30,749 nt of DNA from Bugula neritina. Its lineage: Eukaryota; Animalia; Bryozoa. The notes under the pieces are model-generated. The model searched no databases and had not been told where the DNA came from. It worked only from the letters and a program-made list of their open reading frames with translations. Location: contig CAXIUT010000054.1 of the NCBI GenBank assembly GCA_964035545.1, positions 54,474 to 85,222 on the forward strand, in the 5' to 3' direction. Numbering within the stretch: the stretch's first letter is position 1; each line of letters opens with the position of its first letter. Below are positions 2,018-30,749 of the stretch, piece after piece. Position numbers and translations under genes: made by a program.

Positions 2018-3041
2018 ATGTAGTCCAGTCAAAACAACAGCACTAAAAAAGATGCATAGATATATCTCCTAACTGGATTTTTTGGGGCAGGAAAAACTAC
2101 TATCATTCGAAAACTTCTAACTAACCCTCATGATTAAAAATATGCTGTCATTCAAAATTAATTCTCTGAAGGATAAATGGGTATCGAACAACCTTTAATT
2201 ATGGATGAGTCGGGAACTCCATTTAGTAACTTCTTATAACTACCTAATGGCTGTATCTGCTGCAGTGCTAAGTTTATATATATCAATTCAGAAACGACTT
2301 GATAGCTGCCATCGAGTATATCGTCGCTAATACTACTGTTCGCAAAATATTAGTGGAAACCAATGGAATGGCTGATCCTGTTCAAAGCATAAAACAATTT
2401 TGGTTTGATGAATAAGCTTTAATCAGAGCACAATTGCATTCTGTAGTAGCTATGGTCAATGGAAGGAAATGGGAAGAACAGAGCAAACTAGAATTATTTG
2501 ATAAGCAAATTGCTAGTGCTAATACAGTTATTGTTAGTTTTATTGATCAAATTGGACAAGAAGGGTTTCAAAAAGTTGTAGAGGGAATCAGAAAAATGAA
2601 CTTTTAATGCAATATTTAAAGGTAAAAATAGATTTATTAAGAAATGATATTGAAGATTTAACTTTACTCTTTAAAAATAAATCATTATTTGATAAGTAAT
2701 CTTTATTGCAGATCAGTCAATCCAATGTTTAACATCATGGACACAAAATAAAACCAATTTTCATTCGAGGATAATGCAATCTAACAACTCATTTATAAGT
2801 CTAGCAAGCAGTGGGTTAGTTATTGTGGTAAAGTGGCCTTAATATCATCAGAATAAAGGGCGCAATCTGTCTGAAAAGTCATCCTAATGTTTTCTAGCTG
2901 CAAGGAGTATAAGAGTTGTTCTAAGTGAAACCTACAAACACAGCTAAAAGTGTATATAAAAATGAAAGTCGAGTGTTGTGCATTGGATAGTAGTTATAAG
3001 AATAAAAAATAGCTAAGATTTTACATATAAATAAGTAGTGA
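2018..3041 (+). CDS. CobW/COG0523 family zinc-chaperone GTPase (CBWD/ZNG1-like)
   Basis: TGFFGAGKTT Walker A, IQNEFSE, ELPNGCICC, VETNGMADP, LLWE, IRIKG and LQGV. Two 20-nt introns (2272-2291, 2622-2641) give 328 codons in frame. Confidence 0.93.
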
Positions 3042-3057
3042 ATAAAAAACAATGATA

Positions 3058-5568
3058 TCAATTAGCTTATACTGAGCTTACTTATTTTACTTTGATTAAT
3101 TTGTTATCCCGCCATATTCCTCTTATTTTTTAATTGTAAATTGTGAAAAAAGTGCCCTAGCCATCAATTAAGTCATCTCGAAACTAACCCTCAAACCTTT
3201 ATCCATTGCTTAAAATCAAACATCCCAAACCATCTTTGTCATCTCTCATAAACCTGCCATTATATGATACCCATACTTATTCACCTAGTTAAAAATTTCT
3301 ATAATCAAACCCTTCTTCAAGTTTTTTGACATTTTCATTATAAAGTATTCCTTCTCCTTCCAAAGAATCAGAATTCCATTCACCCTGATAAGCAATCCTT
3401 CCATCTGCATAGTAAAGAGTACCATTACCGTGCATTTTGCCTTAAAACCAATCTCCACAATATTTACCTCCTTAGTTATAGTAGAAAATGCCATAACCAT
3501 TGCGTTAACCATTTTATTTACCACCCTCATACCAACCTTTTACAAACTGTTCTTTTACATACTTCGAATAAATCAAAGAACTTTATCTTTGACTCTCACT
3601 TCTAAGGGATTATTTCTTGTTTCCTCTCAAAGATTATTGAGGCTAACTTTTTTATAATAAATTATTTAGAGACTTCTTGACTGGACTTGGCTATCTTTTG
3701 TGTCTTATGCAGCTATTTTCCTTACTGTGATAAGCTGATAGACCTCCTTTAGAACGAATAAGATTCATAAGCTAAGGGGAAGTGAATATTTAAATATCTC
3801 TTGATTTAGATTTTAGATATCTTTGAGAGTTGCTATCTTTTAGTAGCATTGAATCAGACTATAGTTTTGGAGATCTAGTTTTAGTTCCATTGAACAAAGT
3901 TGAAAAACTATTTTCGTCTGAATGTAAATTTAAACCTATTGGCTCTCTTATGCTTCTCTCAGCTGAATTATCATACTAACTTATTTCATTAATATTTGAT
4001 AAATTTATAAGTTTTTTTGATTATCTAAATCTTGACTCAATGATGTATTCACACTCAGATTCATCAGTAACTTCAATTTAATAGAGATTGTCTAACCAAA
4101 TAGGAGTTTATTGCTAATTCCCAATATCTTCTTCATCTTATTTCATAACCTAGCAAGAGACCTAGTTAGTAATTTAGTTGCTTTACGTAGGAACTGATTA
4201 TGCTTTATTACTATTTTGAACTCTATTTTAAAACATCTCCCATTCCTTTCTTTATCTTCTGATAGTGTAGTCCAATTTGTAGTAGTCAAGTTCTTTTACT
4301 TTATCTCTTATTGTTACTCCTACTGATGCATACTAGCATTCAGGGTGAGATTAGTCTCCATCGCCTTTGACCATAAAACCACTGTCGTCTGGTTTATGAA
4401 ATATTGCACTTTTTGATGTTGTTAATTACTTTTTGTGGTTATTAATTGGATGACTATTTGAATGAATAGATTTTTAGCATCGAGATAGTTATAATTTTTG
4501 TTATTTTATGGTTATAATTTATTTTTATAATTAGTGGTATCCAACTCTTTATTTTCCATCCCATACTAACATCTTCTATACTAATTTTATAAATCCTAGA
4601 CTTATTTATATTCCTCGATTTTTTCTAAATCTCACACACTCTTAAATATATCGATTAAGTTGTTTCTAACTAAAAGTTTCCTTTTGATATAAGGGTCGCT
4701 CTAGCATTAACTGAAGTAAAGTCATTCCTAAACTAAATATCTGTCCATATCCTATATTGGTTGAAAGTCGACCAAGGGCAGTTGTATTTTTAATAGCTAC
4801 AGTCCCTTCAGGAGGCCAGTAGTAGGCAGTAAGAGGATCATATTATTAAGTTTATCTTTAAGTTAAGTTCATAGGATTTATAATAGTTTATCCTTCTTAA
4901 ATAAAATTAGTTTAGTCCTATTGATGACCAGATTGTTCGTAAAAATGAGATAACTACCATTCTCCTATCTTATATTTGCCTTATTTATCTATTTTAATAG
5001 TTTTTGGAGAAAGAAGAGGTTACTTGAACCCATTCTTAACCAAAAAATTACTTGCTTTAACTAAAATATCAATCAATTGTAGTAACTAATATTCTTGAAA
5101 GGGGAGATCTTTGATTCTTCTTCTTTATGCTTCTTGTTCAAGGTTACGAGCACAATATTGTTCACATAGTCTAATTTGTCCTTTAAAATGAGATCCTTCT
5201 TAAATTATATTTTTATGACACTGCCCTTCAAAGATGTTAAGTGTACACAATGTATTTACATTAACTTTGTTATCTTTTAGATCTATAGTATTGATAATAT
5301 TTCCCTTATTATCAGTTAATGAAAACGTCAGCAAAGGTAATATAAAACTATTTGTAATAGTTATTCGTTTATTATAGTACTTGATGTGCTATTCGATAAG
5401 TTAGGTACTTTTTCCATCAAGAGTCATACAAATCTAAGCTATTTCTTGATTGTTGGATTCAAAAAGTTAAATTTTACTGGCAGTATGATGAAGAGCAGAG
5501 TGTTTAAGAGGATGACAAGGACCTGGTAGAAGTGACTGAGAGAGAGGAGTAATAGAAGATTGACCCAT
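3058..5568 (-). CDS. Kinase-like (probable pseudokinase) domain + low-complexity linker + C-terminal MORN repeats
   Basis: 2511 nt (837 codons) from ATG to TGA with TAR=Glu. Begins MGQSS (possible myristoylation). LSPKTIKIDKEGKYKIGEW, YYWPPE and IFSLGMTLL resemble kinase subdomains. YEGGKENGERNGYGIFYY-type MORN repeats lie at about 3070-3560. Confidence 0.72.
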
Positions 5569-7090: not shown

Positions 7091-10000
7091 ATGAAAATCA
7101 AACCACTCAATCAAAAACTAAGACCTATCGCTCAATCACAAGTTATAGCCAATGAACCAACTCTCAACATATCCAACATCAAGTCAAAATACCAACTACA
7201 CTTTGGAAACTAATTCAAACATCTCCTAGAAGCAAGAGATCAAGTTCTAGAACATGAATTTGACTTTTAACTCAAACTTAACAGCTCAGAATTTGATAAC
7301 TAAAATTATACTAATACTTAATGGTATAATTCTATTCTTTTAAAGATTCAATAGTTTCTTGTCTAAAGTCTCAGCAATGTAGTTTCTATTTCATTCAAAT
7401 TCCTTTGTTAATCCAAACTAGAAGGAAAATAAGCTCAAGAGTATGCTTCAAAAAATATGATGGTCAATATTCACTCAATATTCAAAAAAACTATCGAAGC
7501 AATCAATAAAAATTAACATCTAAAAAATATATAAGGCTTAAGAACTAAATTAATAAAAAAAGTAGATCAAATGATAGAAAATATTTTAGATAATTTAGCT
7601 GAAAACTATCCTCAAGCACCAGTGGCAGGAGGAACTCCAAGAATGAGATAAGTGATAAATGATGTAAACAGAACTGAAGATGAACTTAATGATTTTATTT
7701 ATGCTAATGATCTAAAGATAAGTGATTCTCTTTAAATAGTAGAAGATAACAATGGTTTAAAAACAATAAAATTTCAACCTTAGGCAGACTATACTTAATA
7801 TATAATGACAGTGATAAATAAGGTAATTCAAATAACTCAATAGAACAAAGAAGATTCAAGATAAAGAACAGTCAAATAAATATTTACATAGTTCAATTAA
7901 AAACTATTTTATATTTGCCAACAAAAATAATATCAATAAATCATCAATACCCTTCATGATGCAACTAATCCTCAATAAAATACTGAACTAACAAATACAA
8001 TCAATAACTATTTTGATCATACTCTATAACTTAAACAATAAAGCGTCAAAATACTCTAACTTGGATTAAAAAATAAATAAATCAAAAATCATAATACTTA
8101 AAAGTATGAAAAACAATATTTAAACACAAAAAGAAGTTGATAATAACTAACAATTATGTAGATTATTAAAAATGATTCAATAAACTGATTCTGGAGTTGA
8201 AGTATTGAAAAGATAAAAAAAAGCATGAAATAGGACAAAAAATACCAAGTTATTGTAAAAGTATTCAGTAGACAAGATATTGCTAATAAAAATTTTACTT
8301 CAAAACATTCTTCTATTCTAAGAATATTAACTAAATGGGCAGGTTACCTTGAATAAATATTTTAAGAACCAGAATCTCATATTTTAGCTAGAGATTACCT
8401 CTTTAAAACAGTCGAACATTCTATAGTAAATGTTGATGATGGAATAAATGGAAAATAAAGATTAATTAAAATGCTTAAACAAATAGTATATTTCAGTCAA
8501 AAGTCATTTGATACTATTGTTGAATAAAATTACCAATTTATGGGTTAATTTTTAAGTAATCAAGAAGACAATATCAGTTGCAATGTAAATCGATATACTT
8601 AAACAAGAAAAGTATCATCATAGATCAACACAGTTCTTACTTTTCTTATGATTAACTATACATCTCTCCTCATGTCATCATCTGATTAGAGCAGGACAAA
8701 AAATAGCTACTCTCTAAAATACACAAAATATTAACTTAATCTCATTCAAAGTCAGTGATATCATGAGATCAAAACTACAATGCAATTAAAATAGTTTTAT
8801 AAGCATCCTAAAAACTATGTACCTGCTTGATAACAATATAAAGATGTAATAAAAATTCAAATTGGTGAGAATAAAGAATAAATTAGATGATCCAGCCAAT
8901 AACATCATAATTAATTATTTATTTTATGGGTAAAATACAATGTTAATTACAGTTATCATTCAGTAGTCAAAAGGAAAATAAAAGAATTATTTTAATTTTA
9001 GTCATTTTATCTATTAACTAATTAGAGGTAAATTTGGGGCTATTACCTAATGTGCTGTTATGATTTCTCAACTAGATCCAATGATAGCTTCCTGTAAAAG
9101 TAGTTTTTATAATTAAAAAAATAAATTCCAAATCATTCCTAAAATAAAATAAGTATAAAAAAAAGAAACAAACAAAATGAAAGAAGTAGGGAAACAATAA
9201 TTAATTTTATTGGTAAAATAAAGATGAAAGTATAAAATAGTATTTATAAATGTCAAGATTGTTTAAAATATGTAATAATTCAATCTAAAAATCGATTATC
9301 AAATTCTGTTAAACACAACATATGCAATCAATGCATCATTAGATAGGAAAATCCAGTAAAAAAATTTAAAAATAAAATACTTGTTCTCATAGATAAAGGA
9401 ATCTAGTAAAATTGGCTCTATAGAATCAGATAATATAAATCATTCAAACATATAGATAAATATAGTTGTTTTTTATCTGTAAATAGTAAAAATCAATGTG
9501 ATATTAAAAATAATAATAAATTCACAATCATAACTAAAGAAATTTATGATAAAAACTATAATATAAAAACATAAAATAAATGTCTTCTTCTAATTTTGAT
9601 TTTTCAATACTTGATTATGTCGATATTACTAAGAAGATAAAAAAGTCATAAAATAAACCTATAATGAACTTTTATATTAAATTTCAAGTCTTTCATAGAT
9701 ATCTCAATAAATAAAAAATATCATACAACTTGATGAATAAGCATAGATACAAATATAAAAATTTATTGAGGCCTTTTTTATAATTTAGAAGTGAAAAAAG
9801 ATTAATAAAAACAATAAAATTTAAAGCATAAATCATAAACGTGAATAAAGATTAAAAATAACTAAAATAGCTATAAAAGATAGTTGAAGTATATATATTG
9901 AAGACAAAAGATAAAAAGTGTCTTAAATATCCTAAATATGATCGTTTAGATATTTCAGGTATTAAAAGAATATAAGCTTAAAAATTATAAATCAATCAAA

Positions 10001-11823
10001 TACCAAAATTCATTAAATACTTTGATAGGCTACAGACTCTAGTTCTAAATAATAACAATATAAGTTCTATTTAAACATAATATCTCCCTTACTAACTAAA
10101 TTAAATACAATTTGTAAAAAATAAAATAAATTCAATAGATTTGTCTAACAAAAAAAGATAACTACTATTAATTTAAAATCAAACTAAATGTTAGAAATTA
10201 AATTATAAAATTTTGAATATCTTAAAAATATTAATCTCAGTTTTAATAAAATAACCAAAGCAGATTTATTCAACCTCCCTAAACTTACCACACTTAACCT
10301 CTCTTCAAACAAATTGACTGAAATAAAATTATAAAATTTCTAAAATCTTAAAGATATTTAACTAGATTACAATCAACTTATTAATATTCATCTATTTAAC
10401 CTCCCGAAAATCAGTTTTTTAAGATTATAATAAAATCGACTCAAATAAATCAATTTATAAGAACTAAAAAATTTAAGAGATCTTAACCTGGCCTGCAATA
10501 AACTTAGCCATCTTGATGTATCAAATTTAAATAACCTTGTAACTCTAGAGGTAGCATACAATAATTTAACATAAATAAAAGATATAAAATCTAGATAATA
10601 TCTCTAAAATATGTGTTTCATAAAATAAGTTAACCAATGTCGACTTCAATAATCTACCTTAGATTCGTAAGATTGACCTTAATAAAAATAACTTAACAAA
10701 ATTAAAGCTAGATAGCCTAAATAAACTTAATGTAATCGAATTAAGATAGAATAAGATTACACATTTGTAGCTATCTAATCTTCAAAATTTATCTAATTTT
10801 CCAATAACAGACCAACCATTAAAACATGTTAAATTATTTCAACCTTTATAATTTAAGAGCAATATTACTTTATTCAAATAAAATAAAATCAATAGAATTA
10901 ATAAAATTACCCAAACTTTACTCTCTTAGTCTGACAGACAATCAACTTTAGTAAATCAAATTAAACAATCTATAAAGTCTTACAGTTGCTAAAATTTCAC
11001 GCAATAAACTCAAGAATATTGACTTAAATAATATTCCAAAACTTTAAACACTTTTCCTAAATAACAATCAACTTCAATAAATTAAATTTTAAAACTATCA
11101 AAATCTTACCTCTTTAAATCTCAAATAAAATCAATAAAAAAAGTTAGTTTATCTAATTTACCAGAACTTAATCTCCTAGACATCTCTCTAAACTAACTCT
11201 CATAAATCAAGTTATAAAATCTATAAAAACTAACTACTGCTAAACTATTTAACAACTAACTCACACAAATAGATCTATTTAACCTACCCAGTCTTTTTGG
11301 TCTTTAGTTGAAACTAAATAAATTATCGAATATCAAATTAATAAAACTATAATCACTTATGTCTATTGATATCAGTAAAAATGAATTAACTGATATTACT
11401 TTATAAGATTTACCTAAATTATAAATTATAAAACTTTAGTAAAACAAACTAACAAAAATCAAACTTGAAAATTATAACTAACTTAAAATAGTAGACTTAA
11501 ATAAAAATTAGCTATCTAGCCTTGAATTATTTAATCTACCTAACCTTAAAACTCTTACTTTAAGTTATAATTTATTAACTTAAATAAAATTACAACATCT
11601 AGATACTCTTAAATAACTAAATATGACAAATTTAACTGAACTAAAAGTCAAATAACTGCCTTTAAAAATATAAAATCTTCATCTATGTGATCAATTAGCA
11701 AGATAGTTAGACTTTTAAGAACTAAAATAATTGAAAATGTTGAAAATCAATGGAGTAATATAAAGATAAACACTCAAAAATTTATCATAAAAAGTTCAAT
11801 TAAAACTCAATTAAAATGAATGA
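7091..11823 (+). pseudogene. Frameshift-interrupted gene (pseudogene or uncorrected sequence): helical N-terminus + RelA/SpoT-like nucleotidyltransferase + CxxC..CxxC + about 25 LRRs
   Basis: Open from ATG 7091 to TGA 8138-8140, then coding-like sequence continues across roughly ten or more +1/-1 shifts, mostly at homopolymers. Motifs: SDIMRS (8754), VRIKNKL (8865), CELQL (8941, +1 frame), HFIYELIR (9003), CQDC (9251), CNQC (9323). 21-aa LRRs run from about 10030 to 11700. Probable TGA at 11821-11823. Confidence 0.6.
10030..11700 (+). repeat. Leucine-rich repeat array, 21-aa (63-nt) period
   Basis: e.g. NLPKLTTLNLSSNKLTEIKLE / NFENLKDIELDYNQLINIHLF / NLPNLKTLTLSYNLLTEIKLQ. Consensus LxxLxLxxNxLxxIxLxNLx. 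Confidence 0.9.
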
Positions 11824-27299: not shown

Positions 27300-27352
27300 C
27301 CCAACCCCAACCCCAACCCCAACCCCAACCCCAACCCCAACCCCAACCCCAA
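27300..27352 (+). repeat. Internal telomeric tract (CCCCAA)n in left-end orientation
   Basis: 53 nt of perfect C4A2 repeats starting CCCAACCCC, in an intergenic position. Confidence 0.97.
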
Positions 27353-30668: not shown

Positions 30669-30749
30669 GGGGTTGGGGTTGGGGTTGGGGTTGGGGTTGG
30701 GGTTGGGGTTGGGGTTGGGGTTGGGGTTGGGGTTGGGGTTGGGGTTGGG
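30669..30749 (-). repeat. Right telomere, (GGGGTT)n
   Basis: Perfect G4T2 repeats to the last base, ending TTGGG and preceded by TATA. Confidence 0.99.

Follow-up and report, generated by a model that had tools for sequence, protein, structure and literature searches.

To our knowledge, the chemistry of alarmone synthetases and of toxic small alarmone synthetases (toxSAS) has so far been found in bacteria, phages, plastids and a few fungal NOD-like receptors (NLRs). Fungal NLRs with an N-terminal RelA_SpoT domain are cited as an earlier report in a preprint (10.1101/2022.03.16.484565). Among ciliates, Tetrahymena has large, fast-evolving families of genes with leucine-rich repeats (LRRs), for which an analogy with innate immunity has been drawn, and its LRR arrays are built of 90-bp exons (30-residue units) split by introns (PMC6564038). 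The subject of the present analysis is a gene at positions 7091-11823 of a 30,749-nucleotide stretch, called the window (G000:C63:54474-85222, where G000 is the 216-Mb mixed assembly deposited under the name of the bryozoan Bugula neritina). A first-pass annotation of this stretch had proposed a RelA/SpoT-like nucleotidyltransferase (NTase) joined to a zinc finger and a long LRR array. Taken as a whole, we hold with somewhat better than even confidence that the locus is an intact peritrich gene whose conserved domain most likely has a RelA/SpoT-type NTase core. The parts of the gene, all on the forward strand, are as follows.

7091-11823, forward: whole gene, ATG 7091 to TGA 11821-11823, about 1,575 codons in the peritrich code, with about 18-21 single-base indel errors in the assembly
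7091-8560, forward: N-terminal region, about 490 residues, in which no domain was recognised; conserved SSILRILTKW segment near 8310-8340
8640-9060, forward: conserved alpha/beta domain of about 140 residues, a RelA/SpoT-like candidate, in one frame after deleting 8674 and 8922 and adding A after 8957
9251-9334, forward: predicted zinc-binding segment C-x2-C-x20-C-x2-C (CQDC...CNQC)
9335-9945, forward: linker of about 200 residues with no recognised domain, in one frame after corrections at 9503, 9551, 9662 and 9774, and aligning with the homologous contig L090
9946-11760, forward: LRR array, about 27 units with a length of exactly 21 residues each (LxxLxLxxNxLxxIxLxNLxx), and then a C-terminal cap

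Reading this gene requires a ciliate genetic code. The assembly consists of seven large chromosomes (tens of Mb, with the standard code and introns) and some 300 small contigs, many of them from a ciliate. On C87 and C16, two further ciliate contigs, the alpha-tubulin genes have TAA or TAG at canonical Glu positions, and columns of the domain family that are TAA-coded in the window are GAA or GAG in the homologues L086 and L090. Since the tubulins of C87 and C16 put TAA and TAG exactly at Glu sites, the code is the peritrich nuclear code (table 30), in which TAA and TAG specify Glu and TGA is the sole stop. The translation table proposed earlier was thus appropriate.

The motif strings quoted in the first-pass annotation are spread over three different frames of the window sequence, and the reading path from ATG 7091 to TGA 11821 has to switch frame nine times or more and runs into three TGAs at 8138-8200. 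These features would suit a decaying pseudogene of an LRR gene family, its frameshifts being real mutations, as would the guanine-cytosine (GC) content of the locus, which is 20-26% against 30-36% in the flanks, and the long clean frames kept by the neighbouring genes. Short-read data gave a different picture. Logan contigs of four public runs were aligned to the locus (X1 and X2 from one study, X3 and X4 from two others), and where the frame of the window breaks, these contigs, which come from three studies, show single-base indels relative to it. The 3.5-kb contig of X1 differs from the window by 15 gaps and 0 substitutions; gaps with no substitution at all are the mark of consensus error and not of divergence. 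Twelve single-base errors were listed, each backed by X1 or X2 contigs and several also by those of X3 and X4.

8480-10837, no strand: twelve listed single-base errors, of which the extra bases are at 8480, 8674, 8922, 9503, 9551, 9774, 10577 and 10837
Within the same twelve, no strand: an A missing after 8498, 8957, 9662 and 10146, according to the read contigs

The corrections applied were these 12 indels; nine further differences of the contigs were not itemised. After correction, 8201-9224 becomes a single frame of 341 codons containing the entire domain, and 8891-11308 becomes a TGA-free frame of 805 codons, which carries the zinc finger, linker and LRRs from about 9230 onwards. The LRR period of 21 is maintained across the corrected sites 10146, 10577 and 10837. 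In the corrected frame 16 of the 23 substitution variants in X2 and X4 are synonymous, where 23.5% would be expected (binomial P 3.7e-6), showing purifying selection on the gene. The pseudogene explanation was rejected on these grounds, namely the read contigs lacking the indels, the long corrected frames, the exact repeat period and the synonymous excess, and we regard it as extremely unlikely. Introns of 20 nt were rejected as well as a cause of the frame changes, since at 10577, 10837 and 11134 the sequence is off by one base within a repeat unit.

Relatives of the gene were found both in the assembly and in public metagenomes. Piece-wise protein searches of the assembly gave only two paralogues, C51:57399-59870 (824 codons) and C231:6381-8936 (852 codons), and a DNA search of the genome with the locus gave no second copy; a related-locus search among the genome contigs returned one bacterial locus only. 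In both paralogues the D..R, VRIKNR, NDILIN, ECELQL and HLIYE..R motifs and the two CxxC pairs lie in one frame. The search for intact paralogues of the same architecture, which the first-pass annotation had advised, was successful through the domain and zinc finger, after which the LRRs follow in another frame. The LRR part of C51 (L036/L037, C51:59857-60759) and that of C231 (L041, C231:8848-9955) overlap only shortly with the open reading frames (ORFs) preceding them, and this frame change is probably the same kind of assembly indel. A metagenome scan added four loci, L086-L089, with fewer TAA and TAG codons; in L086 the Glu codons of ECELQL are GAA or GAG. When a profile of the stop-free pieces was run against 1.84 billion representative proteins, 119 hits were obtained, all of them short unnamed metagenome fragments, 12 of which are stop-free across all or most of the domain.

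One of these fragments, P0195, crosses the domain in one frame and so confirms the corrected frame of the window. The contig that encodes it, L090 (7,050 nt, GC 0.44), is 59% identical to the corrected 8201-9224 frame and has one TGA-free frame of 1,231 codons comprising the N-terminal region, the domain, the pair CKSC...CYNC, the linker and about six LRRs. It aligns colinearly with the corrected window, with identities of 48%, 59% and 26%, the first of these values being that of the N-terminal region over 310 residues, a region which is conserved in the C51 and C231 paralogues too. Since L090 has all parts in a single frame colinear with the corrected window, the fused architecture is real. 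Members of the family share with the window gene the domain, the zinc finger and, where the contig reaches that far, the LRRs; they differ in LRR number, with about 6 in L090 against about 27 in the window gene. A subfamily, P0201 and P0210, has I-E-M-Q-L in place of C-E-L-Q-L, and its zinc finger is followed by about 150 residues without an LRR pattern. Domain and zinc finger thus form a cassette that is linked to varying C-terminal parts.

Three breaks in the window lie outside the twelve listed corrections.

8138-8200, forward: three in-frame TGAs in frame 1 with another frame open, probably due to unlisted assembly indels
9140-9227, forward: break between domain and zinc finger, for which the simplest cause is a length error in the A8 run near 9160-9167
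11125-11145, forward: break inside the LRR array, with one base missing in caa-ata; the X1 and X2 contigs end or start here

Over 8015-8425 the X2 contig has 4 gaps relative to the window, none of them itemised, and the paralogues and L090 are uninterrupted there. It has 1 gap over 9105-9486 and 7 gaps over 9504-11163, of which 6 were itemised, and the pieces of X1 break at 11133/11134. The relatives are all continuous at the three positions (8138-8200, ~9160 and ~11134).

The second of these breaks bears on whether the locus is one gene or two. As assembled, the domain frame closes at TGA 9225-9227 and the zinc finger is in a different frame, and no RNA run with the gene was found, so that an NTase-like protein ending at this TGA and a separate zinc-finger-LRR protein could be proposed. 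Against such a division, a single frame covers both domain and zinc finger in C51, C231, L086, P0142, P0201, P0210 and P0131, and the linker of about 55-60 residues between them is unbroken in C51, C231, L086, P0142, P0201 and L090. The X2 contig places one indel within 9105-9486, the zinc finger and LRRs of the window occupy one corrected frame, and L090 carries domain, zinc finger and LRRs in a single frame. Given this colinear fused frame of L090, TGA 9225-9227 is out of frame and not the end of the gene, and two genes are very unlikely. The claim that the domain is directly joined to zinc finger and LRRs was borne out in this way, as the paralogues and L090 run on past the corresponding point. 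Joining the locus across its frameshifts, as was done in the first-pass annotation, was likewise justified by the one-frame relatives, although the breaks that had to be bridged are assembly indels and not mutations. The read-contig indels, the corrected frames, the single frame of L090 and the synonymous excess together show that the gene at 7091-11823 is intact and under constraint, has about 1,575 codons and owes its frameshifts to 1-base assembly errors.

The protein encoded by this gene has the order N-terminal region, conserved domain, four-Cys zinc finger, linker and LRR array. Pfam applied to the stop-free piece at window:10209-10331 gave LRR_4 with 33.3 bits (cut-off 27), LRR_6 with 23.7 (23.4) and LRR_1 with 22.5 (20.6). 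The array thus consists of tandem LxxLxLxxN/CxL units scoring above the profile cut-offs, and the earlier count of about 25 repeats rises to about 27 after correction. The segment CQDC...CNQC is present at 9251-9334 as had been noted, and its two CxxC pairs are kept in every full-length relative (C51, C231, L086, L088, P0131, P0142, P0201, P0210 and L090). Pfam on this segment of the homologues gave FYVE, IBR and zinc-ribbon matches, all below cut-off. From the two pairs and their conserved spacing, a treble-clef or zinc-ribbon element is predicted that would bind zinc. No usable domain was found in the N-terminal region by Pfam on pieces or by the Atlas feature search. A weak RasGEF_N (REM) match lies on L088:2356-2679, corresponding to about 8230-8400 of the window and covering the ILRILTKW segment (E 0.0028, 18.3 bits, below cut-off). 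A Walker A motif (G/A-x4-G-K-S/T) was present neither in the conceptual window protein nor in L090 in a test at the level of the motif, and no P-loop family was among the Pfam matches on pieces and homologues. At this motif level the protein falls outside the NLR class of signal transduction ATPases with numerous domains (STAND) as defined by NACHT or NB-ARC, and the statement that no such motif can be seen was correct.

Within the conserved domain the motifs follow in the order (Y)LNxLIHxLL (a helix), FKVSDIMRSK, LVRIKNKL, NNIIIN, CELQL and SHFIYELIRGKFG. Their positions in the window are given below.

8757-8759 (Asp) and 8766-8768 (Arg), forward: VSDIMRSK
8772-8774, forward: window counterpart of family residue K/R42, kept
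8862-8885, forward: LVRIKNKL
8944-8946 (Glu, coded TAA) and 8950-8952 (Gln), forward: GKIQCELQL
9000-9026, forward: SHFIYELIR
9000-9038, forward: SHFIYELIRGKFG, the last domain motif

The near-invariant residues of the family, in P0195 numbering, are D37, R40, K/R42, R74, K76, N77, D85, N89, E99, Q101, H119, Y122, E123, R126 and G130, and the window copy retains all of them, with N at position 85 like P0195. The counts are 109/109 for D37, 113/119 for K/R42, and 43/43 for both E99 and Q101. The Asp lies in FK-I/V-G/S-D-L-L-R-C-K and the Glu-x-Gln in C-E-L-Q-L. Near-invariant polar residues packed this closely indicate a functioning active or binding site with many acidic and basic groups. Judged by its alignment, the domain represents a family that lacks annotation and is under strong constraint; at least 119 public fragments belong to it, and 15 of its residues are near-invariant.

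The D-x-x-R, E-x-Q-L and H..YE strings, which had been singled out in the first-pass annotation as RelA/SpoT motifs, were found at the coordinates quoted there, and Asp and Glu-x-Gln proved invariant across the family. The further element SR.K (SRTK), by contrast, was an artefact of the wrong frame; when base 8674 is removed the region reads LLIHHLIRAGQ, as in P0195. The ATP-phosphate-binding helix R-x-K-x3-S-x3-K of the RelA/SpoT homologues (RSH) is absent, the corresponding family helix being Y-L-N-x-L-I-H-x-L-L with no conserved Arg or Lys, and the profile alignment described below ends short of this helix. Also absent from the family are the acceptor loop P-K-x-x-G-Y-x-S-x-H and the Arg-Thr after E-x-Q; the RSH invariants P94, Y99, H103 and R118 stand opposite T-N-D-I-L-I-N and Ser, Ala or Gly.

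Whether the domain belongs to the RelA/SpoT fold was assessed by comparison of profiles and of predicted structures. Pfam and structure prediction were run on stop-free public homologues as proxies for the window protein, which depends on TAA/TAG read-through. With hhalign, the 119-sequence family alignment (A4) gave a score of 20.6 over 72 columns with an 18-sequence RSH alignment (A5), in the register proposed in the first-pass annotation. The family D, the K/R five residues on, E and Q are paired with RSH invariants D55, R60, E114 and Q116, and the family K-N with the K-D of RSH KDY. None of 120 column shuffles of A5 reached 20.6. A glyoxalase profile gave 12.8 over 14 columns lying outside the domain. 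An earlier hhalign run with three ciliate sequences only had given P 0.11. A local hidden Markov model (HMM) built on 120 closely similar RelA_SpoT proteins of bacteria scored the paralogues at about 0 bits, a blank that is uninformative since the same HMM also missed long RSH enzymes.

AlphaFold2 models of P0195 and of P0142:1-205 had a mean pLDDT (predicted local distance difference test) of 79.7 and 82.3, respectively, with the core above 90, and the elements modelled were, in order, a helix, a strand, a helix, three strands and helices. In Foldseek the top ranks for both models were almost all SAS1, SAS2, RelP, Rel, SpoT, CapRel and FaRel2. The best matches were 5ded_A (E 7.9e-3) and 6fgk_C (E 4.6e-3), with probability up to 0.95, and by position in these matches the family Asp and Glu fall within 1-2 residues of what we take to be the catalytic Asp264 and Glu324 of Rel. 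AbiEii, MenT3/TglT, TENT5 and TUT7 are also among the structural neighbours. The Atlas fold search returned a RelA_SpoT cluster, an AbiEii NTase cluster, glyoxalases and a TPR protein. In the Atlas feature search, unnamed clusters bearing the label Nucleocytoviricota came first, and rank 17 was taken by a cluster that is RelA_SpoT in part. The ESM Atlas clusters nearest to P0195 (features 0.94-0.95, and one by shape) are unnamed proteins of 166-173 residues with that same Nucleocytoviricota label; either giant viruses carry a stand-alone version of the domain, or ciliate contigs have been mislabelled.

Other results weigh against the RelA/SpoT-type assignment and, at two points, against the gene as reconstructed. 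PF04607 gave no match at E <= 10 at the locus or its paralogues in a six-frame scan of the genome, and was silent on the stop-free pieces and on ten whole-domain homologues in Pfam, so that the profile check advised in the first-pass annotation yielded nothing at or above the gathering score. The domain had no match in NCBIfam or PADLOC for the stop-free homologues, and a profile search of the PDB sequences gave 0 matches. The hhalign score is itself weak (P 0.058, probability under 1%), and the best column shuffle reached 20.5. In the same test two unrelated families, RSH and glyoxalase, reached 17.0 (P 0.049), so scores near 20 are not decisive. Seven of the 11 invariants of the RSH alignment are absent (R-x-K, K, P, Y, H and R), with counterparts for D, R, E and Q only. 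On the structural side, Foldseek gave no PDB match at E <= 1e-3 for either model, the template modelling (TM) scores were only 0.25-0.30, and the matches, all below threshold, covered a 65-residue core and stood level with glyoxalase-type modules. The two AlphaFold2 models were built from one alignment and are not independent. As to the gene, the breaks at 8138-8200, ~9160 and ~11134 were settled by gap counts and homologues, not by itemised corrections, and no RNA run containing the gene was found among the public runs.

Given these results, the domain could be unrelated to RelA/SpoT, a family-specific beta-alpha-beta-beta-beta module of an intact gene, having another activity or a binding role, perhaps in an LRR scaffold or adaptor. 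We regard this as possible but doubtful. RSH proteins, a family named in advance, occupy most of the top-50 Foldseek ranks for two paralogue models; the profile alignment favours RSH (72 columns, in register) over glyoxalase; and the invariant positions hold acidic and basic residues, as those of a nucleotide and metal site do. Because several weak tests agree on a family named beforehand and on one residue register, the domain probably shares the alpha/beta NTase core of RelA/SpoT-type pyrophosphokinases. The RelA/SpoT-type identity put forward in the first-pass annotation is weakly supported: the Asp and Glu-x-Gln are invariant and align with RSH, but a profile match, the R-x-K and the acceptor loop are wanting. 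The outcome of the structural check it advised was similarly divided, with mostly RSH proteins in the top ranks but every match sub-threshold.

A RelA/SpoT fold need not be a pyrophosphokinase. The domain might be a pseudoenzyme, a nucleotide-binding switch, or an enzyme of nucleotidyl transfer like the AbiEii- or MenT-type toxins. The loss of the R-x-K, of the Gly-Tyr...His loop and of the Arg-Thr after E-x-Q would fit this, as would AbiEii, MenT3/TglT, TENT5 and TUT7 as structural neighbours. However, the invariant Asp and Glu-x-Gln and the many basic residues kept across 119 sequences argue for catalysis over decay, and RSH proteins rank above the other NTases in Foldseek; we consider this alternative unlikely. 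The chance that the domain is an active transferase seems to us just short of even. The earlier suggestion of alarmone synthesis was not supported, and no claim is made for (p)ppGpp, because the domain has neither the acceptor-binding loop nor the ATP-phosphate helix.

If the domain is an enzyme, a mechanism may be sketched. Its Asp and Glu-x-Gln would sit where the metal-binding Asp and the catalytic Glu of Rel sit. The LRR array, together with the zinc finger, might bind a ligand or keep the enzyme domain closed, and ligand binding could then free a nucleotide- or pyrophosphate-transferring activity on some acceptor, a logic that would be shared with CapRel and other fused sensor-toxSAS proteins. 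An immune or sensing role is suggested by the architecture, but we think it unlikely to prove correct, and an immune function as such is speculation. In its fullest form, the proposal would be a ciliate one-chain innate-immune receptor without a nucleotide-binding oligomerization domain (NOD) module, in which a viral, bacterial or endosymbiont ligand on the LRRs frees an RSH-derived enzyme, and tRNA pyrophosphorylation or an alarmone-like nucleotide arrests the cell, as a eukaryotic counterpart of CapRel abortive infection; this we hold to be quite improbable.

Some further observations concern the surrounding DNA. On the seven large chromosomes of the assembly (C1-C7) the tubulin genes are split by introns, the small contigs are in the peritrich code, and at least one contig is bacterial. 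Telomeric repeats occur in the window as (CCCCAA)n at 6-71 and, internally, at 27305-27352, and as (GGGGTT)n at 30669-30746. From the placement of these C4A2 and G4T2 blocks, the contig is a string of telomere-bounded macronuclear molecules, a unit of about 27 kb followed by one of 3.4 kb capped at both ends. X3 and X4, which come from two other studies under two other organism labels, hold 151-nt pieces identical to the locus, so the same ciliate or a very close strain accompanies more than one sequenced host or sample. This low-GC gene has about 20 indel errors in its 4.7 kb, and the genes beside it have unbroken frames of 550-1,415 codons; it seems that polishing failed at this place. AT-rich genes elsewhere on the ciliate contigs of G000 may look broken through the same indel errors, and apparent pseudogenes there can be artefacts of uncorrected indels. 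The only PF04607 match in the assembly is a bacterial locus, L001 (G000:C311:16844-20227), with a stop-free gene of 327 residues for a RelA/SpoT-domain protein; its two minus-strand ORFs, 1048-2031 and 2028-3170, overlap by 4 bases, the second gene having 380 residues. In another bacterial genome, G063, related to a Sulfurovum reference, five proteins of about 625 residues (L081-L085) have partial RelA_SpoT matches, with the D-x-x-G-x-R and E-x-Q-x-R-T motifs replaced, for example by I-D-I-K-I-K. With these replacements, the five look like RSH paralogues that have multiplied and lost catalysis.

In the literature searched, a ciliate RelA/SpoT-LRR protein is not described. Even without an enzyme identity, an unannotated and strongly constrained domain family has been defined. 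If the domain is an active RelA/SpoT-type enzyme, alarmone-synthetase or toxSAS chemistry would extend into protists, where it would be coupled directly to an LRR sensor; the protein would then be a candidate for protist innate immunity that can be put to the test, from a family that none of the domain libraries searched recognises. Compared with the small alarmone synthetases and the synthetase domain of long RSH proteins (RelQ/SAS1 5ded, SAS2 6fgk, RelP 6ex0, Rel 6yxa/8acu, SpoT 7qpr, RelA 5iqr; PF04607), the window domain has no Pfam match and lacks the R-x-K-x3-S helix, the Gly-Tyr-x-Ser-x-His loop and the Arg-Thr following E-x-Q; its protein, moreover, is eukaryotic, of about 1,575 residues, and carries a zinc finger and LRRs. 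The fused toxSAS of the CapRel type (7ztb, 9erv) and FaRel2 (8pu3) are also set apart, CapRel being an anti-phage protein of bacteria, about 340 residues long, that lacks LRRs and has the tRNA 3' end as substrate. The fungal RelA_SpoT NLRs resemble the window protein in having an effector-type domain N-terminal to a repeat sensor in a eukaryote, but they have a NACHT or NB-ARC P-loop and Pfam-detected domains, whereas the window protein has neither a Walker A motif nor a Pfam match for its domain. In contrast to the Tetrahymena LRR families, finally, the window gene has repeats of 21 residues, in a single frame with no interruption, and couples them to an enzyme-like domain.

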